64,000 bases of DNA from Setoptus koraiensis (GCA_048013815.1 CM106585.1:17608001-17672000), one strand, 5' to 3'. Shown: positions 40,011 through 58,649, counted from the stretch's first letter. Notes: generated from the sequence alone by a model not told the origin. Numbers and translations: made by a program.

Positions 40011-43000
40011 TCAATTACATACTTGATTCTTTGACATGTTATGCGGGTTATAGGCTAACGCATTGGTAGAATTGTATATTTTGGTTATACCAATTAGTCG
40101 ATCAGCCAGCTCGTACATGTTATTCCTCAAGGAGATTACGAGAAATTGAGTGTCCTTAGTTTTCTCTTTTATATAATGGGCAATAATAGACACATTCTTG
40201 AAATCTAATGCAGCGTCTATCTCGTCCATGACATACAGAGGCGATGGTTTATACAAATGTAGAGCTAATATTAGCGCCAAAGATGAGAGGGTTTTCTCGC
40301 CACCAGACAATTTTGTTATTGGGCCCCATGTTTTCTTTGGAGGTCTGACTTTAAACTCTATACCTTCGAGGAACGGATCCAAACTATCACATTGTATTAA
40401 TTCCGCTGAGCCGCCCTTGGATGTAATTGTCTCATAGATCATAGCCAAATGTTTATTGATTTCCACGAAGCCGACCTCAAACTCCTTATGTCTCATGTCC
40501 TTTACTTGTTCATAAGCCTTACGGTGGTCATCACGACGCTCAGTAACCTCGTTTAATTCTCTGGTTCGCTCGATATAAAGAGCCTGCTTCTGTCTATACT
40601 GCTCTATCGCCGCAATGTTAGGCTTTAATTTTTTGATTTCCTTATCAAGATGCTCAATATTCTTCGTCAATTGATTAATGTCTAAATCTTCAACATTTTC
40701 ATCCTCGTCTTCCGCAAGGCTTGTGAGATCTACACCTTCAATCGTATTGGGTTTGAGATTGGCGATCATTGATGACCATTTAGCCACGTCACGCTCTTTC
40801 TCCTCTACTTTCTTCTTCAATTGATCTGCTTTATGCTTGATATCCAAGTTATCACTGAGAAGGTTTGCTTCTTGCTCTTTCATTTTGTTCAACTCTACCT
40901 GGGATGCTTTCAATCTGCCATTTATTTCCTCCTTCTTGGATTTTATCTCTTGGCGCTCATTATCGATTGATTCTAGTTCCTCTCGAATCTTGTGTCGCCT
41001 TTCTTTAAGTTGTATGAGTAAAGTTTTACTTTCTGCTATTTCCTGTTCACACTGATCTATTTTTTCTTTACATTTTTCGATAGAACGGGCGGCAGTTTTT
41101 TTACCTGCCTCAGCTTTAGAGATTGCAAATGAGGCGTTTTCTAAATCTTTCTTGAGCTGTTGTACTTTTCTTTCAGCTGGTCCAATTTTTCCCGATATAA
41201 TAGATTTGATCTGTTGGTTGATCTCGTCCACTTTGTCCTCGAGAACTTTGGAATCCTTTTTCAGATTGTCGTAGTTCTTCTGCAATTTATCGATCTCCTT
41301 CTCAAGGGCACTCTTCTTCTTTTCATCTGGTTTCACCTGTTCCAATCTTATCTTGGATTCTTCTATGGCTGTCCTTAAGCTGGAAACAGTTTTACCAATC
41401 TCATCGACCTCCATCTCGAATTTTGGCTTTTGGTTTCTCATAATCTCATTATCTCTTTTTGCTTTTTCAATGTCAGCCTCAAGTCTATCATGTTCTACTT
41501 TCAGTATGGACAATTTTTCCGAATAATCATGGGCTTCGTTTTCTAGCCGCTCTAAATCTTGGGCACTCAATCCTGTTGCTAAACTGGTTCGACGGCTATC
41601 ACTCGATAAGGCCATCTTACCTGATATAGGTTGACCTCCACCCGACATTGTACCAGAAATCTCTATCAACTGACCTCTCAATGTAACTACTCTCCATTTT
41701 CGACCGCCATAGGCGATTTTTCGTGCTAGATCCAAACTATCGACAACGAGAGTATCGCGAAGAAGGGCAGAAAATGCAGGCACGTAATCTTCATCATCAA
41801 TTTCGATTAAGTCTATCAAGCGTTCGGCAGGCTCGTCGAAGTCAAAATCTGCATGTCGCCATTTTTGTTGCTTATCCAAAGCGGTGAAAACGGCTCGACC
41901 TATGTCGTTTTTCTTCAAGTATTCTATGCACTTTTTGGAGGTTTCAACATTATTAGTAAGTATCTTGTCCAACTGGCTTCCTGCTGCTGTAGATATCGCA
42001 ATATCGTACTTTTTGCTAATATATGCAAGATCTCCCAATCTTCCGAATATACCTGTGAGATGGCCTTTCTTCTTCTGATCCATAAGTCGTGATAGTACAC
42101 GATTTCTAGATTCTTTGGCATGGTGGGCACTTTTGGCTTGGTTTATAGTTTGCATGACTTGTGTACGTTTCGCGTCAAGTTCGTTCCTTTGAGTTCTGAT
42201 GTTTTTCATTTTTTCTATACTTGACTCAATTCTTCTTTCACTTGCAGGAAGATCTGTGTCGAAGCCCTCAACAAGTTTCTGTTTCTCTTCTAATTTGACC
42301 AAACTACTTCGTAACTCTGATTCTAGCGAGGCCAATTTTGATCTCTCCTGGCGTTCCGCTAAAAGATACTGATCAAGATCTGATTTTTTCAAGTCGACGG
42401 CAGATTTAGCTTCATTGATGGCTTTTTGTAGATTTAATAGTTCTGACTCGTACTTTTCCTTGTCTTCTCTCAATGGTCTTACGTCCTCTTCTAAGGTACC
42501 TCGCTGAACACTGAGATCGTCTTCGGCTGCAGTGAATAGAGCTTCAAGTTCTTTCTGTTTGACTAGACTTTCTTCGATCTGCTTATCAAGTAACGGAATT
42601 TGATCACTAGTTTCCTTGAGAAGATCTTCAGCGGCGTTCTTATCGAATACAAGCTTTTTTCCTTTTTCTTTGGTGTTGGTATTCTTAGTTCTGTTTTGCT
42701 CACCTTCTTTTTCCAAAGATTTGTATGTTTCGTTCAAGGTTTCAAACTGTTTAGATAGGACCTCGTTTTCTTTGTTGATTTCGTCGCACTCTTGTTGTTT
42801 CAATTTCTGGCCCTCCTTGAGTTCGTTGACTTGCTGAAGGGCCTCTTTGAGGGTTTCTTCGGCTTTTGAGCGTTCTGCTTCGACTTCATCACATATACTC
42901 TGGGCTTTTGCTTTATGTTTCTGATAAAGAATTTTTTGGCGTTCCATTAATTTATTTTCAAAGCTGAGAAACTTGATCGCTTCATTTCTGACTTTTTCGA

Positions 43001-43805
43001 GCTTATCCAATTCTTTTTTCACCAGTTTTTGCCTGGTTGTCTTCTCAGACCAGAGTTCATTTAGCTCGTCAACTCGCTCTTGGATTTTCTCTAATGGTGC
43101 TTTCAATCTTGTTGTTCCAATCATTTCTTCAAGGAATTCTAACATACCAGATTCGTTTTCATTTTCAGCTTTAGGTTTCATAAGCGATATTTGTTCGACT
43201 TCTCCCTGTAAGATAAGAAAACGGTTGTATCTGAGATCAATGCCACGAGATTGTAATAGTTGTGAAACTTTTTTGAATTGTACTCTGTCATCATTTATGC
43301 AATAGTAAGAAGAATTGTCTTTATGAGCTGTTCTGGAGATTGTGAATTCCGTGCCCTCAATGATATCCATCTCAAATTCGTGTTTGTCGTGAATGTAAGC
43401 AAAATGGACGGTCACCGTACAATCTCTACAATTGGGATAGGTGTCTGAATTGTGAATGAGTAATGAAAGCTTTTTGAGTCTCAATTTTTGCGCTCTATAA
43501 CCGAAAACAAATAACAAGGCATCAATAACATTGGACTTGCCGCTCCCATTGGGACCAACGATGGCTGAAAAACATTTGTGGAGCGGACCTAAAGATTGTG
43601 TTCCTCCGTATGATTTGAAATTTCTTATGACAATCTTTGTGATAACAAGACGTTGTCCGTCTTGAGAACCAGTGTGCTTGGGTGGCGGGGGCACATAAAT
43701 ATCTCCGCACACTTTGTGGCACGCGTCCTCTTTTCCTTCGACGTCGTACTCGTCCTCTTCCTCCTCGAAGGATTCATCGTTGGCTGGTTGGTCCGCCACA
43801 GTCAT
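40011..43805 (-). CDS. SMC4: Structural maintenance of chromosomes protein 4 (condensin), 1264 aa, intronless
   Basis: Walker A GPNGSGKSN, NRFLILQGEVEQI, hinge GIFGRLGDL...RVVTLRGQLIEISGTMSGGG, signature LSGGEKT, Walker B/D-loop YVMDEIDAALDFKNVSI. Confidence 0.97.
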   Translation of the reverse strand: MTVADQPANDESFEEEEDEYDVEGKEDACHKVCGDIYVPPPPKHTGSQDGQRLVITKIVIRNFKSYGGTQSLGPLHKCFSAIVGPNGSGKSNVIDALLFVFGYRAQKLRLKKLSLLIHNSDTYPNCRDCTVTVHFAYIHDKHEFEMDIIEGTEFTISRTAHKDNSSYYCINDDRVQFKKVSQLLQSRGIDLRYNRFLILQGEVEQISLMKPKAENENESGMLEFLEEMIGTTRLKAPLEKIQERVDELNELWSEKTTRQKLVKKELDKLEKVRNEAIKFLSFENKLMERQKILYQKHKAKAQSICDEVEAERSKAEETLKEALQQVNELKEGQKLKQQECDEINKENEVLSKQFETLNETYKSLEKEGEQNRTKNTNTKEKGKKLVFDKNAAEDLLKETSDQIPLLDKQIEESLVKQKELEALFTAAEDDLSVQRGTLEEDVRPLREDKEKYESELLNLQKAINEAKSAVDLKKSDLDQYLLAERQERSKLASLESELRSSLVKLEEKQKLVEGFDTDLPASERRIESSIEKMKNIRTQRNELDAKRTQVMQTINQAKSAHHAKESRNRVLSRLMDQKKKGHLTGIFGRLGDLAYISKKYDIAISTAAGSQLDKILTNNVETSKKCIEYLKKNDIGRAVFTALDKQQKWRHADFDFDEPAERLIDLIEIDDEDYVPAFSALLRDTLVVDSLDLARKIAYGGRKWRVVTLRGQLIEISGTMSGGGQPISGKMALSSDSRRTSLATGLSAQDLERLENEAHDYSEKLSILKVEHDRLEADIEKAKRDNEIMRNQKPKFEMEVDEIGKTVSSLRTAIEESKIRLEQVKPDEKKKSALEKEIDKLQKNYDNLKKDSKVLEDKVDEINQQIKSIISGKIGPAERKVQQLKKDLENASFAISKAEAGKKTAARSIEKCKEKIDQCEQEIAESKTLLIQLKERRHKIREELESIDNERQEIKSKKEEINGRLKASQVELNKMKEQEANLLSDNLDIKHKADQLKKKVEEKERDVAKWSSMIANLKPNTIEGVDLTSLAEDEDENVEDLDINQLTKNIEHLDKEIKKLKPNIAAIEQYRQKQALYIERTRELNEVTERRDDHRKAYEQVKDMRHKEFEVGFVEINKHLAMIYETITSKGGSAELIQCDSLDPFLEGIEFKVRPPKKTWGPITKLSGGEKTLSSLALILALHLYKPSPLYVMDEIDAALDFKNVSIIAHYIKEKTKDTQFLVISLRNNMYELADRLIGITKIYNSTNALAYNPHNMSKNQVCN

Positions 43806-44693: not shown

Positions 44694-45916
44694 ATGCGTT
44701 ATTACTGTCATCATTGTCACAGTCAGATTAGCGCCGAGGATTTATTACCAGATTTCACATGCCCCAATTGCCAATCGGGTTTTGTTGAGGAGATAACTAT
44801 TACACAGGCATCGAGGCGAAGCTCAAATGATCGATCATCATCTAGAGATGATGGGACGGGCTTAGGTTCGTCCAGGATATCAAGTGATGAATACTCAGAC
44901 GATAACAGTGACGCAGAATTAATGGAGGCTGTTGGAGCTCCTCTCGCTCATCTTTTTGGTCTATATGAGCAGCGTATGTCTGCAAATAACCCGCAACAAC
45001 CACAGGGAAGCACATCAGCGTCCACTGAAGCCACTACTGCCCCGGATGTCTTGACCGGAGTAGCCCGGTCTGCATCGACATCAGCCGATCCACATGCACA
45101 TCGATTCATAATCAGAGCGCCTGTTCAAAACAGAGGTCAACGTAGCCGATCACAAGATCAAGCACTATTAAATGATTCTACATTAGTAGATGTATTATCA
45201 GAATTTATAAATCATGCACCACCGTTCGGAAACCGTTTCACAGGCTCCTCAAATGCTGGCCAATCAAATAGTAGCGGAGTTCAAACACCAGCTGGACGTG
45301 GCTTGATAAACATAGATGTACCATTACCTTTATTCTTACATAGTAGCCCAGGTGATTACGCCTGGGGAAACTCGGGGTTCGATGCAGTTATTACACAACT
45401 TTTGAATAACCTTGATGGTACTAGTAGTGGACCACCCCCTATGCCGAAAGAACAGGTAGACGAACTGCCTACTGTAAAAATAAGTGAGGAACAAGTTTCA
45501 AAACAAGGTTTACAATGTACAGTATGCATGGAAGATTTTCGTATTGGAGAAAGTGCCCGCCAATTGCCTTGTGAACACACATTTCACCAGGACTGTATAA
45601 TACCATGGCTAGCTATTGTAAGTAAAAATATTTTGAAATAATATTTATGATAATAATTGACCAAAAACTTGACTAACATTTATATTTTATCCTCTATATA
45701 AAGCACGCTTCATGTCCAATATGTAGGAAAACGTTTGGAGTCCTCCCCGGTGCTGCAAGTTCACAACAACGGGCCATTCAGACAACTGGCCCTGCAAGCA
45801 CCAGTTTAGATATTACAAGTCACCCCTCGACCATTGTGTCAACTTCAAACTCCGATAGTCACGCAACTCCAGATCCATCGCACAACTATGATTACACTGA
45901 GGATGATTGTGACTGA
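44694..45916 (+). CDS. RNF115: RNF115/RNF126-like E3 ubiquitin ligase; join(44694..45617,45704..45916), 378 aa
   Basis: N-terminal zinc ribbon RYYCHHC...FTCPNCQSGFVEE, GDYAWGNSGFDAVITQLL, and RING-H2 CTVC...CEHTFHQDCIIPWLAI|HASCPICR. The RING is completed only by removing an 86-nt intron (45618 GTAAGT ... GACTAAC branch point ... AAG 45703). Confidence 0.92.
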
Positions 45917-45967: not shown

Positions 45968-47945
45968 TTAATTTTGCACTTGACCGTATAGATCTCTAAT
46001 AGATCCATTAACAATTGTTTGAATGTGAGATGTAGGCATTTTCTTCTTTCTTTTGGTTTGCTTGGTGAAGGCGGGGTTGAATTTGCAGCTGAACACTCCG
46101 GCAAGAGGCATGTTACACGGCAGTGCAGGTCCCTTGAGATTTGACCCAATATCTAGTTGTGAGCCGTTGCCTATTAGGGTGGGAAGATTGTTCGAATATT
46201 GTTGGCCAATGATTGATATTTGACCGTAGCCCGACGAATTAGATTTGTAACCAGCAATCTTTTTACCCGCTGCAGATAGTTGCTCTGCTATGGAGTCTAA
46301 AGATTCATTACTTTGTGAAAATTCTGAATCTAAAACATTTACATGGAAGTGTCTATAATATATGAACATGAACGCGATTCCTGTTATAAAGCCCAAATAA
46401 ATAGTCAGGATGGATAGGTTTCTGAACCAGGGAATATATGAGAGTGATGAAAAGCCGACGCATACGGATAATAGTAAATTGTTCTCTAGGAACATGAGTA
46501 GGTAATAGATGAACATTTTTTGTTTTGAATTGCGCTATTTCGTTATAGTGTTTTCGAGAGCCAACCAACCAAAAGAAAAAAAAAAGGAAAAACACGATTA
46601 GTTATTTGTTGAAAATTGTAGTTAGTTTAGTTTGGTTTGGTTGTAGCATGTGATATCAACTTACCTCTTCGTAGTTTAGGTAACAAAAACAGTAGACCCA
46701 AGCAGTGATGCCGGCATAAAAGAATTTCTTTGACTTGTTCAAATCCTTTTCATCTCTAAGTAAATTGTTGGGTAGTAGAAGCCACAAGAACATGGAGGAC
46801 CAATGAAGGATAAGAACTATAACAACCCAGTAACCATAATGAACAGCGTAGATAGTCAGCGCAACAATTCTCGATGATACTGTTCCTAATCTCCACAAGA
46901 ATTGTGTTATAACACCGAGCCATGTTAAGACAAATCTCTGTAGAAATTTCTCTCTGACATATTTGGTGAATGAAGCAAGTGCCCAACAAACGCTAAATAG
47001 TGACAACAGGACTGATGTTATGCTGAGGCTTGATATTGACGTTGGTGATGTTCGCGACCAGATAATGTAGGTTTGAAATAACAATAATGGCGCTGATTGT
47101 AGAAAAGCATGACACATCCTCAATATACACAAATCTCTTGCATCATTTTTGACTGTGGTTGTGTCATCAACAGGTATCACAAGGCGTATATATCTGAATA
47201 GTATGCCTCCTTGGGCACAATGTATGACTGCCTCGAACAGTATGGCCATATAATAGTCTGATCTTATTTTGGCAGCACTATTACCAGGTATTCGTTCTCT
47301 TGAATTGTGCACAACTTGATGTTGTCCACCGGATGACGATGATGTTGAGGTCATGTGATTTTGTATGTGTATGTGGTAGGGATGAGAGGGCGACGATGAT
47401 GCCGACGAGGACGACAGCGAATAACCAGCCAACTCTAGATCGTCTTCAAGCTCATTTTGTGTCTCTTCGATTTTTCTCTTGTATTTCTGAAATTGTGTTT
47501 TAAGTGACCATTTCAAAGATAATGATTGACTTATTAGCGATGAGAAACAAATAAAGGTGAGGCCTAGATGGGCCCAGATTCTAGTTTGCGCGGATTGATA
47601 TAATGCAAAGAATGCTATAATGTTAAATGTAGAATCACAGAAATAGGCAATCATTGAGATTAGATTGAACATGAGATCGCAAATGGGTAAGAATTGTGCG
47701 GCTACATTTGTTTTGTTTGGCCCGATAATGCTGGACAACGTATGCTGCTGCCTGGTGTCTGGGTGATGATTTAGATTTTGGCTGTCTATTATCTGGTTGT
47801 TATTATCTAACTGTTGTTGTTGTTGTTTGCGGTCGTTCGTTGTGGTGAGGAAATGATCTTGTATATTTTGAACAAATTGTTGCTGGTGTGGAGGGGTGAG
47901 TATACGAGCGAACTCGTGGTCGGCAGGAACAGTGGTGGGCGCCAT
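45968..47945 (-). CDS. XKR: XK-related protein (XKR family lipid scramblase); join(complement 46665..47945, 45968..46534), ~615 aa
   Basis: Multi-pass XK pattern (AYFCDSTFN, HAFLQSAPLLLFQTYI, SLFSVCWALASF, LWRLGTVSSRIVAL). A 130-nt intron 46664..46535 (GTAAGT, ACTAAT branch point, T-tract, TAG) joins YLNYEE|RNSKQKMFIYYLLMFLENN in phase 0. Start uncertain (47984 is TTG; first ATG 47945). Confidence 0.88.
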
Positions 47946-48550
47946 CACTGTTAGCTGTGTTTGCTTTTGTTGCTGATTGTTCAATTTTTGTTTTTGTCTT
48001 ATTAGTGAAAATCAAATCGAATTAATTCCGATAATTGTTTTTCAATTTGTGGTCGTTATTGGTTGAATAATAATGATTATCCGTTAATAATAGTGCTTGT
48101 TATGTATTATCTGTATTGATTTGCCGCTGACAACTGTGTCTCATTTGCGCTGGCCTCAATGTAGAATAATCTAAACGATGACCATGAATCGCCGGCGATA
48201 CGAGCCATTCTTTATTCGATTTATATTTTCAAAGAGCCCGAGTGTTGGCTTGCAGAGTGAATGTGCGTGTGTGTGTGCCACGATATAAGCGAGTGTGTGT
48301 GTGTGTGTTGTGTGCTGGTTGTGGTGTTTGTGGAATTTTTGCAAGATTGCTATTTGCAACTGAGTGCCAGCGAATGGACACAAGAATCCAACGATAATCT
48401 GCTGCTGCTGCGGCCTTTGTAACACTAACTGACCAAACTGCGAGCGACAAACGCACAGCAGAGAACACAGACTCCCTTGTCCGTGCCTGCCGGACTGTGT
48501 GTGCGTTTGTGTGTGTGTGCGTGTGTGTATGCGTATGTGTGTGTGCGTGC

Positions 48551-48584
<34 letters not shown>

Positions 48585-48964
48585 GAGAGAGATGAAGAAT
48601 GTTTCTTTGGCAACAACAGCACACGACGACCATGATGCGAGAGTGTGTGTGTGTTGTGCCCATTGTGAGGAATGATAACAGCGCACCACGCAAAAGGAAC
48701 GGACAAGAAGCGGGTCGCCGCATCAAAATTCTATTGATCGAACTGGCAGCGCAGCCATTAGCGCAGCAGCGGTGCGGCGGTCACTATCCACCAGTGGATG
48801 GCGCACAACAAGCGCGAGAAAATAAAGAACCGAGAAGGAGTGTTTCTATTGGCCGATTCTGCTGATGTTGCTTTACGATCAACAACAGAGAAGCGCAAAC
48901 AGCAAAGGAATTCCAACTATGTTGTGTCCACCACTGTTGCTCATTACAGCCTGTCTCAGTCAGA

Positions 48965-48971
<7 letters not shown>

Positions 48972-49037
<66 letters not shown>
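48972..49037. repeat. (TG)33 microsatellite
   Basis: Read directly from the sequence. Confidence 0.95.
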
Positions 49038-49042
<5 letters not shown>

Positions 49043-50757
49043 GCGTATGCATGCCCGCACCAGCAGCATACTATTGCTGATATATAGTAATAATAATAAT
49101 CTGTGAGTGCTCCATGTATTCTATAAATTCGAACATGGAATATCAAGAGACAGCCCATATAATCTTTAAACAAGCTCACATAAGAGTCCAAACAAAAAAG
49201 AATCTCGTTCGAACTTCCAAGCATACACACCACGTGCTCTTTCCCCCGTCACTGGCCCCGGTGAAAATTGGCCGGCCAGCGTCCATTCGTGACAGGGGGA
49301 AGCAGGCGCAACAGCCACCACGGGCCAAAGGCAAATAATCGAGTTTTGTCCCCATCAATTTTGCCGAGTCCTTCTTTTTTATCTTCCCTAACCTTCATCA
49401 TTCCTACGCCAATCAGCCAATCGCTGACACTCACACACGCACACACAAAACCGGACCCTGTATCATTCTAACGCAGGATATATATGCAGTGACTGACCAA
49501 AAGAAGCGATTATGATGATGATGATGCAGGACAGATGTGGACTGGCAGTGAGTTTTGGACATGGCTACAGGATGAGGAATCTCATGCTCACGATATCAAA
49601 CATTCTTAACGTGCCTTTTTTCATTCTGCAAAACAAAATTCACTCGCTTCTCGAACGTATATTCCGTTTGTTGCTTGCTAACCATAAGCTAAATTCTTGA
49701 CTGACATGCTGCTCATGGTAGTAGGCATTATCAGGATATACATGCACAACGAACATGCATCGATGAAATGGAATAATAATTAGACTGAAATGACATGACC
49801 GATATCATGGGTCAGCTTATTAACTCGCCCATAATGCTGTGTTGATTTTATTTATCAGAGCAGAGCAAAATGGCATCTGTGAGCCACACTCTCTTATTTA
49901 TTAAAAGTTGTGAACAGCAATGTTAACTAGTGGCAAACTTGTTGAATGCCTACAATTTCTATGTCCACATTTAAATTGACAGGGCGACAAAGACATAAAT
50001 AAAAGAGATCCATAAGAAATAATGGGATATTGCATGAGAGCTGGCCTGTTTAGCTTGCAGCGCCAAAAGTCGTTTCTAGTTATGCTGCTCACAACTAATT
50101 GGCACTCAATTGTAAATGTTCGATTCAGGATTTGATGCAATGCTGAACTAGTTTCGAATTATGCCAATTCATCACATTTGCAACATACGCGCTGATTATG
50201 ATTTCAATCTTAATTTTAATTTGAATTACAGACAACATGATTCTCTTTCTCTCATACAGTATACAGTCTGTATAAATTAAGTTTTGTCGGCCCGCTCTGG
50301 GTCTTGTGTAGTGTGTAGAATGTTTAGAAAGAGATACAATGATAAGTCCATCTCATACCCAAACCAGGTATCCGCCGGGGTATTGTTGACGACCGCAACA
50401 ATTGTATGCGTGTGCGAGCAAAATGTAACAGCGACCGCAATGAATATGATTCAACCATTGCCGTATGCCTACCCAAAAATACCCAAAAAAAGGAACTATT
50501 TTTGTGCGAGAATCGAACAAAAATCGGTTATTCATTTCTGCGCACGAAGAAGAAAGGAAATTAATTCTTTCCCCACCATTGTTCAATTCTTTTACCCACA
50601 ATAGTCATCCTTTAGGTGCTTCCTTTAGGCAGCTCATTCTGTGCTCACTAGCAAGGCCTAATAAACATGTGATTTATATTTAATGTTGACATATTTATAG
50701 AATGATTGAACCCAATTTAGATTTTTCAAAATCAATAAATTAAAATAAAAAACAAAA

Positions 50758-52002
50758 ATGGAAAAAATATCTAAAGATACGGTTAGTCTCATAAATTCAC
50801 TCTATGAGCAACTAAAATCTATTGAAGAAGTAGCTGGACTATTGGAATTGTCTTCAGCGACAGTGAAAAGAGTCATAATGGGATCACAACCGAGAAGGAG
50901 TATTTCGCATTTAAATAACAAAATGACTGATCAGGAAAAAGCTCAAATTGAGGCAACATTCAGATTTCTTCAAGAGAGAGGAGAACGTGTAACCCTGAGT
51001 AAGATTCGACAACAAAGTAACTTAATGCACAAATCCATAGGAACCATTTGGGATACCATGAAGGCAATGAACTTAGGTTACCCATTGAAATCAAGAAAAG
51101 AGAAGGTTCCTATCAAAAAAATTAGAGGGGCAGTTACAAACCAGCTTCAAACTCCAAATACAAACGGGCATTACGGAGGTACCAATCAACAACAAGCGGC
51201 AACAACAAATCAATCTTTACTTAGTAATGCCGACCTGGCAGCTGTAAACAAGCCTCCGATTGAAAAGATCGAAATATCACAAGGCAGAATTGTCAGGCAT
51301 CCTATAAGTAAAAGTGGAATGCCACAAGCAAAAAACTACTTCACACCAGCGAAAGCCCAGCTCCAAATACCAAATGCGAAAGGACGACCGGCAAAAACAA
51401 GTAAATCTTTAATCAGGAAGCCTGTCACTAAACCTTTAATTGAGAAAATTCTTTCCGACATAAAATATTCCGTTGGAAAGAATGATCTGCCGGTAACAGT
51501 AAATCAGCCTCCAGATATGAAAAAAGAGCTTCCGATGATAGTTGCTAAGCCTTCTATTGATAAGAGCGAGCAACCGACTGCCCAACAAGGTAAAACTAAT
51601 TCACATAACGAACAAACTCACCCAGGTGATATTTCCGGCCAATCCACCACCATTCTATCAACAAATTCGTGCTCGGAGAGAGAGAAGGACATTTTGAATA
51701 TGAGCGTTAATGATGTAATTGAAATAATCCTAGAAAAAGATGAAATTTTGGGCAAACGTCAAGACATTTTCCGCGAAAACGTAAGTTCCATATCTAATTA
51801 CCATCACTTCTAGACTACTGCTGCAATAGACTTGACAAATATTCTTACATCTGTTTATATACAGGAAATCGATGGGAAATCTTTCATGCTACTCGATCAA
51901 GAATGTATGTCAAAGGACCTGGGTCTAAAACTGGGACCAATTCTCAAAATAAAACATCTACAAGAAGAGTTCGCCAACAAGAGAAGTTCCGCACAAGGAT
52001 GA
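50758..52002 (+). CDS. HTH-HTH (Tc1/mariner-like DNA-binding domain) + C-terminal Ph/Scm-type SAM domain protein; join(50758..51780,51865..52002), 386 aa
   Basis: An 84-nt phase-0 intron (51781 GTAAGT ... TATACAG 51864) joins MSVNDVIEIILEKDEILGKRQDIFREN|EIDGKSFMLLDQECMSKDLGLKLGPILKIKHLQEEF, a complete SAM. N-terminal KSIEEVAGLLELSSATVKRVI and RVTLSKIRQQ...SIGTIWDTMKAMNLGY resemble two HTHs. The gene model and SAM are well supported; transposase ancestry is less certain. Confidence 0.8.
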
Positions 52003-53777
52003 ATTGTCATTCGAAACGCCTTTATCACGACAGAAATATCCTCCACCGATGATCTCTCGTGTCGTACTTTGGTGAGCCGAGTTGCTGTTCTATTCTGAAA
52101 TTTACACTCTAAAATTAATATAAATAAACCTGTTACACCTGGTTGAATCAAAAGCCACCCATTCATCTATCATACTGACATAAGCCAGCAGGTCACAGGA
52201 TCTAGCTTTCAAACAATCATCCACATATTTAGTTATCAAAAATGACGCGACGAACTAGCCAAACAGTATCTGTTTTGATATATCTCATCACGATTTTCTT
52301 ATAGCAATATTAATCAATAAAGCAATACATTTATAATTATACGACAACTATACTGCGTATGAACTAAAATTTACTCAACGTAAAAAGTGTAAGTTACTAT
52401 TTCATAACGATCTTCATCAATAGAGTTTTTGTTGGAGCAAGTTATGTAAAAAATATGTGAGCGATCGTCTGACGGAGCAGTAAGACTTGCAGTATGTCAA
52501 CAGAGAAATAGATTTGATTGTCTTTTAGATTCTACAACAATCAACTTGATAATCATCTAGTTGAACAACCACAAAAATCTATATCTCTGTATCTAGCAGT
52601 GACTAGTCATGTGTATTTCCGGCTAGAACATGCAACAAAAGGTGTAACAATCTATCGGGTCTCGGGGCAATGGGTTAGATATTGGCATTTTATATTTAAT
52701 TTGATTTTTTTCTCTTATACAGTCAACAAAGAATGATCTCAAGGATCACAGATGCGCTTCCCTTGTTAGAGAATTCCAGTTGCTATAGAAATATTCTACA
52801 ATTGATATCTACATAGATTAGAATAGTAGAGATTGGGTATATCACTATTTTATACCTTGAATCCATTAACTTCCGTTCTGGAATTTAGTGATCGAGAGTT
52901 GATTCAGGGCCCTGTTCAGCGTATGAATGTAAGTGTATTTAGTATCAACAGTTGTTTAGGACTACTCCAGATTGAATCAGGTAGAGTATATGGCGATTAG
53001 AGTATATCTGGAAACGTCCACTATATCCATTCTCACTTCTTAAATTTAGGCCACGAACTATGGACAAACTGGGTGCTTCATTTTCTCCATTTCTAATTTC
53101 ATTTACTTCTCTTCGCTGTTCATCCTCTAATCGGTTCGATATCGGGCCATCCATAAACAGGCAACCGATGAGTTTCGTTGAGATATTTGAATTACTAAAG
53201 TTTACTGAGATAGTCATTGAATTAGTTTTACGCCAGTTTCATTAGAGATTAAACATTAAAAGATTGAGAATGTAGGTCATAGTATTTGAGACCAAATATT
53301 AAGTTCCAACGCTTACAACAATCTGTCAGTGAAAGATGTCCGATTTGAGAATGAACCGATCATTGAAGGAACAAACTCTGTCACAATAGAGATAGTTAAT
53401 CATGATGAGCATAACTGTCCAACGTGACTAACAAGCCGAATCGTCGTTCTGTTTTTAATTATAATTACACATCACCTTCTAGTTGCTAATCATAAAATAG
53501 TTTAGCATCTATATAAATGTGGGGTGTACCTTGGGACATTTGAATCATAGGTTACGTCCACTTACACTGTTTCTTGTCATTTTTTCTTGGAATAGTTACA
53601 ACTTGTGTCCAGTTTGTTGATCTCGTTCACAGAGAGAGCCACATCTCGATGCCTCTAAAGGTCGCTCGAAACCCGAGCACAACGACTCGTGACATTCAAA
53701 GCACGTTGCCCTTTGGATTAGCAACAATTCCATGATTTATTTACACAATAGTCAACTTGTGTATCAAAATGTAATTC

Positions 53778-55268
53778 TTACAGTTTTAGCTGAATATTTT
53801 CGTGTTCAAAATCGATATGCCCGTTCTCTGTAACAAAATCCTCATTATTAGGCGAGTCTCTAGTTTTCTCTTCCAACTCAGAGACTAAACTATCAATTTT
53901 CTCTTTACATGAAACCAAATCTGTTTCACATCTGTGCAACCTTTCTTTCTGCTTCTCAAGTTCATTTTCTAGTTTGACTTGATCTGACTTAAGATTGCTA
54001 ATTTCTTTCTCAAAATTTTGATTCTCCAATTTCTGTATGTGAGTTTGGTTCTCAGACCACAACTTCTCCAATTGTTGAATTTCGTCTTCGATTTTAGATA
54101 TTAGTTCATTTTGTTCTAAATTTTTAGTTTCCCAATATTCGGATTCTGTGTCTAGCTTGTTGAGCTCATTCTTTTGGTCAATCAGAACACGTTTCTGTAA
54201 CTCAATGACACGCAACATGTCCTGTCCTATCTGAGAGACGGACATATTACTATCTAATTGTTTGTCATATGATGATGCTGCGATAGACTCATTAATAGGA
54301 TAATTTAATGCGTTCTGATTACTTGGCGGTAACCTAACATTTATGGCAGAACCTCTATTGATGATTAAACCAGGTTCGATAAATCTGGGTCGATTAGTGA
54401 TGCTATGGGGTTCCATGGGACGATGAAATAAACTTGCTGATGAATTATTATACATAGAAGGAGTATTTGAGTTAACTGAGTGTTGCTGTACACCTGTTGA
54501 TGGCATTGTTGAAGAGTACCTTAAGGCTGGATTGGGGCCAGGGGAATTGAGAGCATTCATCATTGGTGAAGTTTGCATGTGTTGCTGTTGTTGTTGTTGA
54601 TGCTGTTGTTGTTGTTGCTGTTGTTGTTGCATAAGGTACATGGCCGACATGCTAGATTGCAATCTACCATCATAAGAGGCCTGGGATGCAATAGAAGAGC
54701 TTGACGAAGCCTGTGGCATTTGACCCCGTTGTTGAACAGCCTCTATGTAATCCATGTAACCTGGTGGACATCTACGCCTGGGTATAGAGGGCGACGGTTG
54801 CCTCACCCCATAGATATTTAGTGGGTTTTGTGTGGGAACATAGAAATTGGACCTTAGTTGTTGTTGTTGTTGTTGAAGATGATGATTATAAGTGGGCAGC
54901 TTAGGTTTGGCCGGAACAGCAGGAGGGTTTTGGCGCTTCTTATTAATAGTGCTATATAGATCCTCGTAAGGTTGTTGGGCGGTTATTGACTGTGGAGTGG
55001 CTGATTTTCTCAATATAAATTCTACTTCGTTCATTCGATCACCCCATCTTTGTAGCGTGACTAGCGGTTGCTCCGTTGGAGCTAATAAACGTTCATTTGT
55101 TCCCCATTTTTCCACCATGGTAAACCTGCCTGTTTGTTGGGTGGCATGAGCTAAGGCAAACACGATCTCTTGACAAGTGGTGCTCAATTTGACTCCACAA
55201 ACTACTCGTTCCACATTATCCACCCAAACTCGGAGCTCCATTCCTGGTTGGCCTCCATTGAGCTCCAT
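53778..55268 (-). CDS. RASSF8: Ras-association domain family member RASSF7/8-like (N-terminal RA domain, Q-rich middle, C-terminal coiled coil)
   Basis: MELRVWVDNVERVVCGVKLSTTCQEIVFALAHATQQTGRFTMVEKWGTNERLLAPTEQP...WG...VEFILR is the N-RASSF RA domain. ATG at 55268 or 55241. A possible GTAAGA donor next to the stop makes the extreme C-terminus uncertain. Confidence 0.9.
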   Translation of the reverse strand: MELNGGQPGMELRVWVDNVERVVCGVKLSTTCQEIVFALAHATQQTGRFTMVEKWGTNERLLAPTEQPLVTLQRWGDRMNEVEFILRKSATPQSITAQQPYEDLYSTINKKRQNPPAVPAKPKLPTYNHHLQQQQQQLRSNFYVPTQNPLNIYGVRQPSPSIPRRRCPPGYMDYIEAVQQRGQMPQASSSSSIASQASYDGRLQSSMSAMYLMQQQQQQQQQHQQQQQQHMQTSPMMNALNSPGPNPALRYSSTMPSTGVQQHSVNSNTPSMYNNSSASLFHRPMEPHSITNRPRFIEPGLIINRGSAINVRLPPSNQNALNYPINESIAASSYDKQLDSNMSVSQIGQDMLRVIELQKRVLIDQKNELNKLDTESEYWETKNLEQNELISKIEDEIQQLEKLWSENQTHIQKLENQNFEKEISNLKSDQVKLENELEKQKERLHRCETDLVSCKEKIDSLVSELEEKTRDSPNNEDFVTENGHIDFEHENIQLKL

Positions 55269-55676
55269 CCAGAGTGTTTCGGTAACCAATATTAACAAAG
55301 GCAAGCAATGGTCTAACGTGGTGTGTTTTTAATAATAATAGTAATAATAAAAATAATAATAATAAGGTCACTTCAATTAAGACATTAAAATAGTAAAAAA
55401 ATATGTATATAATATTTATATATATTACATAGACGAAATGATTGAAAAGAATTGTAAAAAAATGACAATATTTTTGTTCATTAGCACTAGAATACACATA
55501 AACTAAAAAAGAGAATGTTCGTTATCTGTGCACTCCAATTGAAGCTCTACGTTGTGCACTTCTGTGCCTATCTGTGTTTACAAGTTGTATGTGCGTGTGT
55601 CTGTCTGTCTGTGTCGGTGTAAGTTCTTCATTTGTCTGTCTGTCTGCGTGTGTGTCTGTGTATGTGTGCGTGTGTG

Positions 55677-56432: not shown

Positions 56433-58649
56433 TCAAACAACAAAAATCGATCTGGGTGATTTCAAATATGTTCTCCTAAAACGAGGATTTAGGCCAAGGC
56501 ATACTAATCCTACAATTGATATACATATGAAATATAGCAGTAGACATAAGCTTATATCACCATTTGATACCTTGAACTCGCCATCATCCACTCTGTCATT
56601 AGGGTGATCGCGTATTAATTTGAGAGTTTGCTCCATGTGATTTCCAACATATTTAGTATCAGCAGAGTTTTTTGAGACTATTTCCGTTTGAATATGATCA
56701 TGTCTATAGCGATTTAGAAGATATTTAAAAATTTCCTTGGTGTCCCATTTTATATCAGTGAGAACCTTGTTGGGGATATAAGGTGTATCTCTTGTGTCGA
56801 GGTAGCACTTTGGACAGTCCAACGCTGAAGGATATATCACTTCCTCCAAAGGTTTTCTCTTATTCAATTGTTTTTCATTGTTCAATCTTTCATTGACTCG
56901 ATTGTGGGTCATCCATAACCAGAGAACTGATGAATTGCGTTGAGACAATTGAGTCTCAAGAGTAGCTGACTCCTTCTTGAAATTTTCAGCGCATTCGGAG
57001 CAACCAAAATAAGTTATAATATAATCTCTCATGATATACAAGACGGAGTGCAAGTTACCCCAAGCAGGCGGAGCCTTCATGAACTCGCTCACAGTAAGTG
57101 TGTGGAAAGTTAGCCATAGAGAGCAAGGATACCCTTTATGAAAAGTCTCAGATTCACTACATGAAACCCATTCATTTGCTTGGGCCGATATATTTGAAGA
57201 CGGATTGTTCTCTATATCGGATAGGATGGCATTGAGTTCACGATGAGTTAAGCCGGTCTTCTCGAAGCGAGAGTTATTGGCGTCTAAACGTGCATTGAAA
57301 GCATTCAGAAAGTTGCCGGTTACTTCGCTCCATTGTGCAACTGGAAGAAACTTGAGGAAAACTCCTAGTAGATTTTTGATGATTAAATACTCGTTCGGAG
57401 CAATGTCTCCCCTAGCTTGAATTTCATGATGGAATATGTAGCGAATGGAATTAATAATATCCATGGAATAAACCTTTTTCTTACCATCTGGATAGGTGGA
57501 ATCTTTCAATTGTGCAGTTTCTTCAAAAGGACTTTTGACAAGAGGAAAAGCTTCGTCGGAGTGGTCTTTTGGTGGAATACTCTTGTTTCTGTTCAAGGTT
57601 TCCAGTTCAATGGAGTAGTACGACTCGAGAAACTGTTTAAATTTATTGTACATCCTGTCCTCTTGATCCGTTTCCTCGTCATTTGATGAGAACGTTACGT
57701 CGGATCCCTTCAATAGTAACTGATTTACTACCTTGCGACTTCCTGAACTGTTTTCTGCATATCTTACAAGAATAGGCATTAACTTACTGAGTTCATTCAT
57801 AGTAATTGGTAAAGTCAATAATTTTATAAACGAAGTATTATTAGCAAACACTGTTCTAAGTTCCAATTTATGACTCAACAATGAAAATTCTAAAATTAGC
57901 TTCCTGCCAAGAAAGGAATTATCCGGTTCAATAATAAACAGAATGTCCCTTTGTTCATCGTTAACTTTCTCACTGTAAATTGATTTTAGTTCGTTTGGGT
58001 CGAGCTCAGCAACAGGATTTAGAGCACGTAAAGTAGATGGAATATTTTTTCTGTCTTTTAGTTTCATTAGATACTCTATTATACCCTCCTCTATTCCATC
58101 TATATCCCAATTCATTTTAAGATCTCTGAAATTGGTAGGTGGATCTTTGGGATCTTGAGCAATTGCATTCGGAGGAAATATAAGTATAGTAGGATAGCCT
58201 TGAATATTGTTTTCTGAGCATGTTGGTATATTTTCGTCTCTAGAGCAATCAACACCTGCTATCTTCACAAGTGGGCTCCAATTTTTAAGTCTTGTAGCAA
58301 CCTCTTTGTAGATGGGGGCAAACATTTGACAGTGACCACAAAATGAATTGTAGAATTCTACCACAAATGTTGTGTTTTTGTTAGTGTGAAACACTGTAGG
58401 AATGAATGAGGTCGCATTCAGTCGTATCACATCATCTTTATCAGTATACAAATCAGTAATGGTGGTGTCCTCTTTAAGAAAAGTGAGCGAGCTGACATAA
58501 CCAAACATTATTGTTGTTATTAAAGATACGATTATCAGCCTGTAAGTAGTGTTAGTTATCCATTGATTTTGTGATCCTTTCTTGGGTCGATCGCGCCACC
58601 ATTTTGTGGTGGAAGATCTTATCTCATAGTTTCTCAAATATGTTTCCAT
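56433..58649 (-). CDS. QSOX1: Quiescin sulfhydryl oxidase (thioredoxin + ERV/ALR domains), 738 aa, intronless
   Basis: N-terminal hydrophobic signal/anchor, Trx VEFYNSFCGHC, GYPCSLWLTFHTL, ERV FGCSECAENF, LWLWMTHNRVNERL, YPSALDCPKC, C-terminal TM helix. Confidence 0.95.
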   Translation of the reverse strand: METYLRNYEIRSSTTKWWRDRPKKGSQNQWITNTTYRLIIVSLITTIMFGYVSSLTFLKEDTTITDLYTDKDDVIRLNATSFIPTVFHTNKNTTFVVEFYNSFCGHCQMFAPIYKEVATRLKNWSPLVKIAGVDCSRDENIPTCSENNIQGYPTILIFPPNAIAQDPKDPPTNFRDLKMNWDIDGIEEGIIEYLMKLKDRKNIPSTLRALNPVAELDPNELKSIYSEKVNDEQRDILFIIEPDNSFLGRKLILEFSLLSHKLELRTVFANNTSFIKLLTLPITMNELSKLMPILVRYAENSSGSRKVVNQLLLKGSDVTFSSNDEETDQEDRMYNKFKQFLESYYSIELETLNRNKSIPPKDHSDEAFPLVKSPFEETAQLKDSTYPDGKKKVYSMDIINSIRYIFHHEIQARGDIAPNEYLIIKNLLGVFLKFLPVAQWSEVTGNFLNAFNARLDANNSRFEKTGLTHRELNAILSDIENNPSSNISAQANEWVSCSESETFHKGYPCSLWLTFHTLTVSEFMKAPPAWGNLHSVLYIMRDYIITYFGCSECAENFKKESATLETQLSQRNSSVLWLWMTHNRVNERLNNEKQLNKRKPLEEVIYPSALDCPKCYLDTRDTPYIPNKVLTDIKWDTKEIFKYLLNRYRHDHIQTEIVSKNSADTKYVGNHMEQTLKLIRDHPNDRVDDGEFKVSNGDISLCLLLYFICISIVGLVCLGLNPRFRRTYLKSPRSIFVV

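Follow-up and report, generated by a model that had tools for sequence, protein, structure and literature searches.

SETMAR is a host-transposase fusion built on a Tc1/mariner DNA-binding domain. Tc1/mariner domains are the commonest donors to such fusions, in which transposase domains have been joined to KRAB, SCAN, and SET partners (Cosby et al., bioRxiv 10.1101/2020.05.07.082677). In a screen of 10-million proteins, the Caenorhabditis F-box A2 family was found to carry a mariner helix-turn-helix (HTH) (PMC12062965). Among Polycomb proteins, a chain of SAM domains from Sfmbt, Scm, and Ph links PhoRC to PRC1 (PMC4863741; PDB 1pk1, 1pk3, 5j8y). SAMD1 (Atherin) has a winged-helix DNA-binding domain, a disordered linker, and a C-terminal Polycomb-type SAM; its binding to chromatin requires the two domains together, and it tethers L3MBTL3 (PMC8115922).

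We analyzed a two-exon gene in a 64,000-nt stretch of the Setoptus koraiensis genome (GCA_048013815.1 CM106585.1:17608001-17672000; hereafter the window, with positions counted from its first nucleotide). A first-pass annotation of the window had proposed that this gene fuses a domesticated transposase DNA-binding domain to a Polycomb-type SAM. The gene is immobile and spliced, occupies the same position in two species, and is selectively maintained. Since its transposase-derived and host domains share one transcript, purifying selection, and synteny, it is a host-transposase fusion. The interpretation we favor, at a probability of roughly 0.45, is that this lineage-restricted host gene consists of the N-terminal bipartite HTH of a Tc1-like (DD34E) transposase and an Scm-like SAM, with the catalytic domain and transposon ends gone, and that its protein tethers or nucleates Polycomb-type assemblies.

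Like SETMAR, the KRAB, SCAN, and SET fusions, and the F-box A2 family, the gene carries a transposase DNA-binding domain without the transposition machinery together with a host effector, is immobile, and is under purifying selection. It differs from those fusions in having a Polycomb-type SAM as the partner, in encoding the HTHs and half of the host domain in one exon instead of joining them by splicing, and in the strong erosion of its basic DNA-contact positions. Host-transposase fusions are well known, but we found a Polycomb-type SAM as the partner described nowhere. A full-text literature search for a transposase-SAM fusion gave no match, and a SAM partner is absent from the text of both bioRxiv 10.1101/2020.05.07.082677 and PMC12062965, including the nine supplements of the latter. 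A profile search of 1.84 billion representative proteins returned no other protein with this architecture beyond one orthologue. The first-pass annotation knew of no description of the pairing, and neither the literature searched, screens of transposase fusions included, nor these protein representatives supplied one. It had named annotation of this architecture across arthropods as a refutation, and these searches gave no such case.

The gene also resembles two Polycomb-linked proteins. As in Drosophila Scm, the SAM lies at the extreme C terminus past a disordered linker, matches that of Scm without gaps, and keeps both end-helix leucines and five of eight mid-loop residues. Unlike Scm, the protein lacks the MBT repeats, the zinc finger, and the Scm body, and the rest of it is the transposase-derived HTH module. 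The order of an N-terminal DNA-binding-type module, a linker, and a C-terminal SAM is that of vertebrate SAMD1, whose SAM is the second-best match in the PDB. However, the N-terminal module here is a tandem tri-helical transposase HTH, while that of SAMD1 is a winged helix that reads CpG. As the two genes are not orthologous, the shared architecture is convergent.

Table 1. Features of the fusion gene and neighboring genes in the window
Feature	Position	Strand	Evidence or remark
Gene, two exons	50758-51780 + 51865-52002	+	386-aa protein
Exon 1, 341 codons: start codon, transposase-derived domain, linker, first SAM half	50758-51780	+	Continuous ORF
Predicted bipartite HTH domain (aa 1-112) from a Tc1-like (DD34E) transposase DNA-binding domain	50758-51093	+	Profile search, hhalign, BLASTP
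First predicted three-helix HTH (aa 6-43)	50773-50886	+	AF2 helices 6-19, 22-29, 33-43, pLDDT ~90; weak Pfam HTH_38, HTH_7, HTH_40
Second predicted three-helix HTH (aa 58-103)	50929-51066	+	AF2 helices 58-73, 80-86, 94-103; aligns with HTH_Tnp_Tc3_2 part
Low-complexity K/P/S/T/Q-rich linker (aa 113-307)	51094-51678	+	Alignment with L001, composition
First SAM half (aa 308-341), helices 1-2 region	51679-51780	+	85% identical to orthologue; gap-free with Scm SAM once joined
Intron, 84 nt, phase 0, GT..AG	51781-51864	+	Spliced contig of run X1; same position in L001
Exon 2: second SAM half (helices 3-5), short tail, stop	51865-52002	+	PDB matches, omega 0.018
SMC protein, one 1264-aa ORF	40011-43805	-	Ordinary animal gene
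RING protein	44694-45641	+	Ordinary animal gene
XK-related protein, two exons	45968-47984	-	Ordinary animal gene
RASSF8-like RA-domain protein	53778-55304	-	Ordinary animal gene
QSOX-type sulfhydryl oxidase (Thioredoxin + Erv1)	56433-58649	-	Ordinary animal gene

Several lines of evidence bear on the gene model (Table 1). A continuous ORF extends from 50758 to 51813. Since exon 1 comprises 341 codons, the intron, which has GT at 51781-82 and AG at 51863-64, is in phase 0; it carries an in-frame TAG at 51811-13. Exon 2 adds 45 aa and ends with TGA. At the other end, the start codon corresponds to Met1 in both the orthologue and the related transposases. The joint between 51780 and 51865 is carried by one 241-nt Logan contig (depth 2.9) from run X1, whose listed kind, "RNA?", is a guess at its type; the contig maps to 51722-51780 and 51865-52046 and skips 84 nt bounded by GT..AG. 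In contig L001 of a second species, the intron falls after the same codon (FREN/EIDG) and is 112 nt long. As this is not a multiple of three, read-through would shift the frame. Between the species, identity is 69% in the intron and 87% in exon 2, and the downstream exon of L001 codes for a near-identical peptide. Exon 2 alone scores 27.8 bits against the Scm SAM; once the exons are joined, the score is 46.5 bits, in a single alignment without gaps.

Together, the contig, the conserved intron position, and the gain in SAM score reveal that the gene is real and spliced. The first-pass annotation had noticed that the ORF ends at 51813, had placed an 84-nt GT-AG intron at 51781-51864, and had predicted that splicing completes a SAM, and all of this agrees with our data. 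That annotation had also stated that an unspliced intron would refute it, which is contradicted by the spliced contig and by the retention of the intron in L001. Raw RNA-seq from three runs with the same species label (X8, X11, and X12) contained 0-1 reads at the gene, so either expression is low or those libraries are uninformative. An AATAAA at 52123-52128, 121 nt past the stop, may serve as the polyadenylation signal; the spliced contig stops at 52046.

The sole close homologue, P0001 on L001, is an orthologue in a syntenic position. It was the one protein recovered when exon 1 was used in a word-indexed protein search, and exon 2 alone gave no match; the gene was seen in only two fairly close species in the profile search of 1.84 billion representative proteins. 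The first-pass annotation had suggested looking for orthologues between genes for XK-related and RASSF8-like proteins, and this is where the orthologue lies. The window and L001 share the order and orientation of genes for a 315-aa RING protein, the XK-related protein, the fusion, and the RASSF8-like RA-domain protein, and neighboring proteins are 89% and 96% identical. Between the two fusion proteins, the N-terminal domains are 68% identical, the first halves of the SAM are 85% identical, and the second halves of the SAM are almost identical. In both species, a single exon encodes the HTH domain together with the first half of the SAM.

We estimated omega between the window species and L001 by the Nei-Gojobori method. 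The transposase-derived domain (aa 1-112) gave 0.16, with 0.30 for the first HTH and 0.095 for the second when taken singly, and the SAM gave 0.045. The synonymous difference (pS) for the gene was ~0.55. Neighboring genes have omega values of 0.04-0.08, and dN of the N-terminal domain is 4-9 times theirs. The values of 0.16 and 0.045 indicate that both domains are under purifying selection, as judged from this pair of species; the first-pass annotation had predicted dN/dS below 1. We also noted that dS of the gene, ~1.0 between the species, is about twice that of its three neighbors (0.32-0.51), for which small sample size, codon usage, or the local mutation rate may be responsible.

We found no hallmarks of a mobile element. 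Pfam detected no DDE/D catalytic domain, and aa 113-341 had no similarity to the catalytic part of P0019, a related transposase. No flanking inverted repeats were found in 48500-54000, and there was no second copy of the gene in the 64-kb window. These results match the first-pass annotation, in which neither a DDE/D domain nor terminal inverted repeats had been seen. An 18/19-nt direct match between 48828-48846 and 50888-50906 (the QPRRSIS codons) was considered as a paralogous remnant and rejected; it has no extension or protein-level similarity and is probably due to chance. Long (TG)n and (TGCG)n microsatellites occur ~1.7-2.2 kb upstream of the gene (48500-48600 and 48965-49050), and a (CA)n patch complementary to them lies at 49421-49449.

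It is very improbable that the locus is non-functional, whether as a decaying transposon remnant that lies beside a SAM exon by chance or as a gene carried by a mobile element. Very low expression evidence and the restriction of the family to two fairly close species would fit such an origin. However, the ORF is intact in both species, with the above omega values at a pS of ~0.55, and the HTH and first SAM half share an exon in each. The syntenic position, the spliced transcript contig, and the lack of inverted repeats, a DDE remnant, or a second copy in the regions searched also argue against it, and this explanation is largely refuted.

To trace the N-terminal domain, we used HMMER to compare a profile of the two orthologous domains with the 1.84 billion representative proteins. 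The search recovered the orthologue and 16 further proteins at E <= 1e-3. Between 13 and 15 transposase N termini aligned end to end, with residues 4-112 of the query on residues 2-111 of the target (E 1e-7 to 8e-4). Five full-length relatives of 304-331 aa (P0006 and P0011, and their cluster mates P0018, P0019, and P0020) have HTH_Tnp_Tc3_2 and DDE_3, and four of the five contain a D-84/85-D-34-E triad, which is the DD34E spacing. By these motifs, the full-length relatives are Tc1-type DD34E transposases. Three multi-HTH repeat proteins (P0008, P0013, and P0017) were set aside as relatives, as they matched one subdomain only. BLASTP of exon 1 against P0019 gave 27% identity over 104 residues (E 5e-8) and no similarity past the DNA-binding domain. 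Profile-profile comparison with hhalign gave a probability of 99.5%, but since its comparison set was picked from the HMMER hits, the search of 1.84 billion proteins is the unbiased statistic. Matches in the ESM Atlas (scores <= 0.88) were leads only. The N-terminal profile had no meaningful match in a PDB sequence search, and Pfam searches with exon 1 and with the N-terminal 115 aa left HTH families below the cutoff of 27 bits (HTH_40, 17 bits; HTH_38, 14.6 bits).

An AF2 model of the domain (pLDDT 79 overall, ~90 in the bundles) contains two three-helix bundles with a disordered linker between them, in agreement with the two HTH-like segments of the first-pass annotation. Structural neighbors were IstA, Tc3 (1u78), Mos1, Pax5/6, CENP-B, Myb repeats, and AFDB clusters named "Transposase Tc1-like", all with weak scores. 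The best Foldseek E values were 0.15 against the PDB and 1.6e-3 against AFDB clusters (TM < 0.5), and VIA-align Z scores were at most 7.2; over both bundles, Tc3 1u78, Pax5/6, IstA, and CENP-B reached a Z of only 5.4-6.8. These matches are consistent with a tandem HTH and do not separate transposase, paired, Myb, and resolvase folds. The first-pass annotation had suggested an AlphaFold and Foldseek comparison and expected a Tc3/Mos1/SB DNA-binding domain; Tc3 and Mos1 are among the neighbors.

Both the fold and the Tc1-type transposase ancestry of the domain are clear: it is homologous to the bipartite DNA-binding domain of Tc1-type DD34E transposases, as the first-pass annotation expected, and not to an ordinary host family. 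Homology to the five full-length relatives extends over the N-terminal 110 residues, starting at residue 2, and the core residues in common are Y16, V25, T35-V36, I64, V78-T79, and L89. Unlike those transposases, the protein lacks DDE_3 and the GPKxK linker and has far fewer basic residues, and its gene lacks inverted repeats, is syntenic, and has no second copy in the window. Intact genes for 331-aa DD34E Tc1-like transposases with kinship to the domain are present on two short metagenome or run contigs, L002 and L003 (ENA ERZ28601755, Logan ERR3210053). No inverted repeats were found on L002 (1.7 kb).

We asked which DNA-contact features of the transposases remain in the domain. Its net charge is +5 in both species, compared to +8 to +25 in the related transposase domains, most of which have ~+18 to +20, and the first HTH is net neutral or acidic. 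Of 13 columns that are K or R in 70% or more of the transposases, 4 have K or R in this domain. In the GPKxK linker, the G (present in 92% of relatives) and the P (85%) are replaced by H/Q and L/Y, and a Gly takes the place of the conserved Arg in the second recognition helix. The first-pass annotation had taken a QPRR motif for a GRPR-like linker. This assignment fails, as the motif reads QSKK in the orthologue and GPKxK aligns a few residues later, with SHLNNK. Other features persist: the hydrophobic core and 10 of 16 highly conserved transposase positions are kept, the TV(K/R) at the start of the first recognition helix is retained, and the whole domain is still basic (pI 9.5-9.7). Since only 4 of 13 basic positions remain and the GPKxK linker is lost, sequence-specific DNA binding by the domain is unproven, unlike its fold and ancestry.

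These changes raise the question of whether the HTH-derived domain still binds DNA at all. It may instead have become a protein-interaction or regulatory module, with the protein capping, modulating, or adapting Polycomb SAM polymers, for example by limiting the length of Ph/Scm chains or bringing in another partner. The absence of 9 of the 13 basic positions, of GPKxK, and of the Arg in the recognition helix, together with the low charge and the neutral or acidic first HTH, points in this direction, as does the purifying selection that the domain nonetheless experiences. The residual basic character, the retained core and conserved positions, and the TV(K/R) start argue the other way, and we regard this explanation as doubtful.

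For the SAM, searches used a 71-aa segment joined across the two exons. In the PDB, the best match was the Drosophila Scm SAM (E 2.8e-11), which aligned over 61 residues without gaps at ~46% identity, followed by the SAMs of SAMD1 (2.7e-5), L3MBTL3 (4.2e-5), Ph (3.6e-4), and Sfmbt (4.8e-4). Only Polycomb-type SAMs fell below E 0.01, while those of BicC, SARM1, ANKS6, and SHANK had E > 0.1. Exon 2 alone also matched only Polycomb-type SAMs in the PDB (Scm at 1.8e-5, then L3MBTL3, SAMD1, Ph, Sfmbt, and PHC3). The 34-aa SAM tail of exon 1 found no SAM by itself and is informative only when joined to exon 2. With Pfam SAM_1, the joined segment scored 22.4 bits (E 1.6e-4), 0.6 bits short of the cutoff of 23. 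The matches indicate that the SAM is of Polycomb type and closest to Scm, within the Ph/Scm/Sfmbt/L3MBTL group that the first-pass annotation had named.

We compared the residues that mediate SAM-SAM contacts. In Scm, mutation of L855 and L859 in the end helix stops polymerisation (Frey et al., PMC4863741), and the mid-loop surface comprises E833, D835, A838, L841, L842, M846, K849, and Y850 (PMC4863741). The equivalents of L855 and L859 are both Leu, within KLGPILK, in both species. On the mid-loop surface, five of eight residues are identical to Scm (E833, D835, L841, L842, and K849), and the protein differs from Scm by A838S, M846C, and Y850D. All of these end-helix and mid-loop positions are identical in the orthologue.

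A SAM of this kind could also serve without Polycomb. The protein would then be a self-polymerising DNA-binding repressor or architectural factor in which the SAM serves only to add avidity to weak HTH-DNA contacts (as in Yan/TEL, LEAFY, and the SAMD1 ring) and does not dock on Ph, Scm, or Sfmbt. SAM polymerisation boosts DNA or chromatin binding in SAMD1 (PMC8115922) and is reported to do so in LEAFY (PMC4844672), and a need for avidity would fit an HTH domain whose basic character is weakened. The three mid-loop residues that depart from Scm are also compatible with this idea. Nevertheless, no other SAM comes close to Scm as a match (E 2.8e-11), and both end-helix leucines that mediate the Scm-Ph contact are kept. 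We consider a Polycomb-independent role unlikely.

Our favored interpretation remains a Polycomb tether. In this model, the C-terminal SAM would make head-to-tail SAM-SAM contacts, for which the end-helix leucines and most Scm mid-loop residues are kept, with its own kind or with those of Ph, Scm, or Sfmbt. Targeting to chromatin or DNA would come from the N-terminal HTH module, probably with altered specificity or with weak binding that depends on avidity. In this way, repressive assemblies of the Polycomb type would be tethered or nucleated at particular sites, by a mechanism analogous to those of Pho/Sfmbt-Scm (PMC4863741) and vertebrate SAMD1 (PMC8115922). Points that count against this model are the eroded basic positions and low charge of the HTH domain, the faster protein change of that domain, the three substituted mid-loop residues, the Pfam scores below cutoff, the undiscriminating structural matches, and the sparse expression evidence. 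If this is true, a DNA-binding-type module and an Scm-like SAM in one small protein would make a minimal natural Polycomb tether, and transposase capture could feed the Polycomb system, beyond regulators of the KRAB, SCAN, and SET type.

How Polycomb finds its targets is a long-standing question. In flies, to our knowledge, Pho-Sfmbt-Scm, which is held by SAM-SAM contacts, is the only sequence-specific link. We suggest, with considerable reservation, that the gene could give Polycomb SAM polymers a new, lineage-specific point of entry directed by sequence, invented independently of PhoRC and SAMD1 but similar to them. Its targets might be relics of the transposon from which it arose, which would connect Polycomb repression with the control of transposons in this arthropod lineage. 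If instead the domain does not bind DNA, the gene would still be a case of selection maintaining a transposase HTH in a new role.

The orthologue should be biochemically easy to test, since at 212 aa it is essentially the HTH domain and the SAM, joined by a 13-residue spacer. Approximately 172 residues of the linker in the window gene (net charge +14) are missing from it. From the alignment, this length gap appears to be either a recent expansion here or a deletion in the other species. The linker contains internal repeats, including KP-x-IEK motifs and a 31-nt repeat whose two copies, at 51197-51227 and 51389-51419, are ~80% identical.
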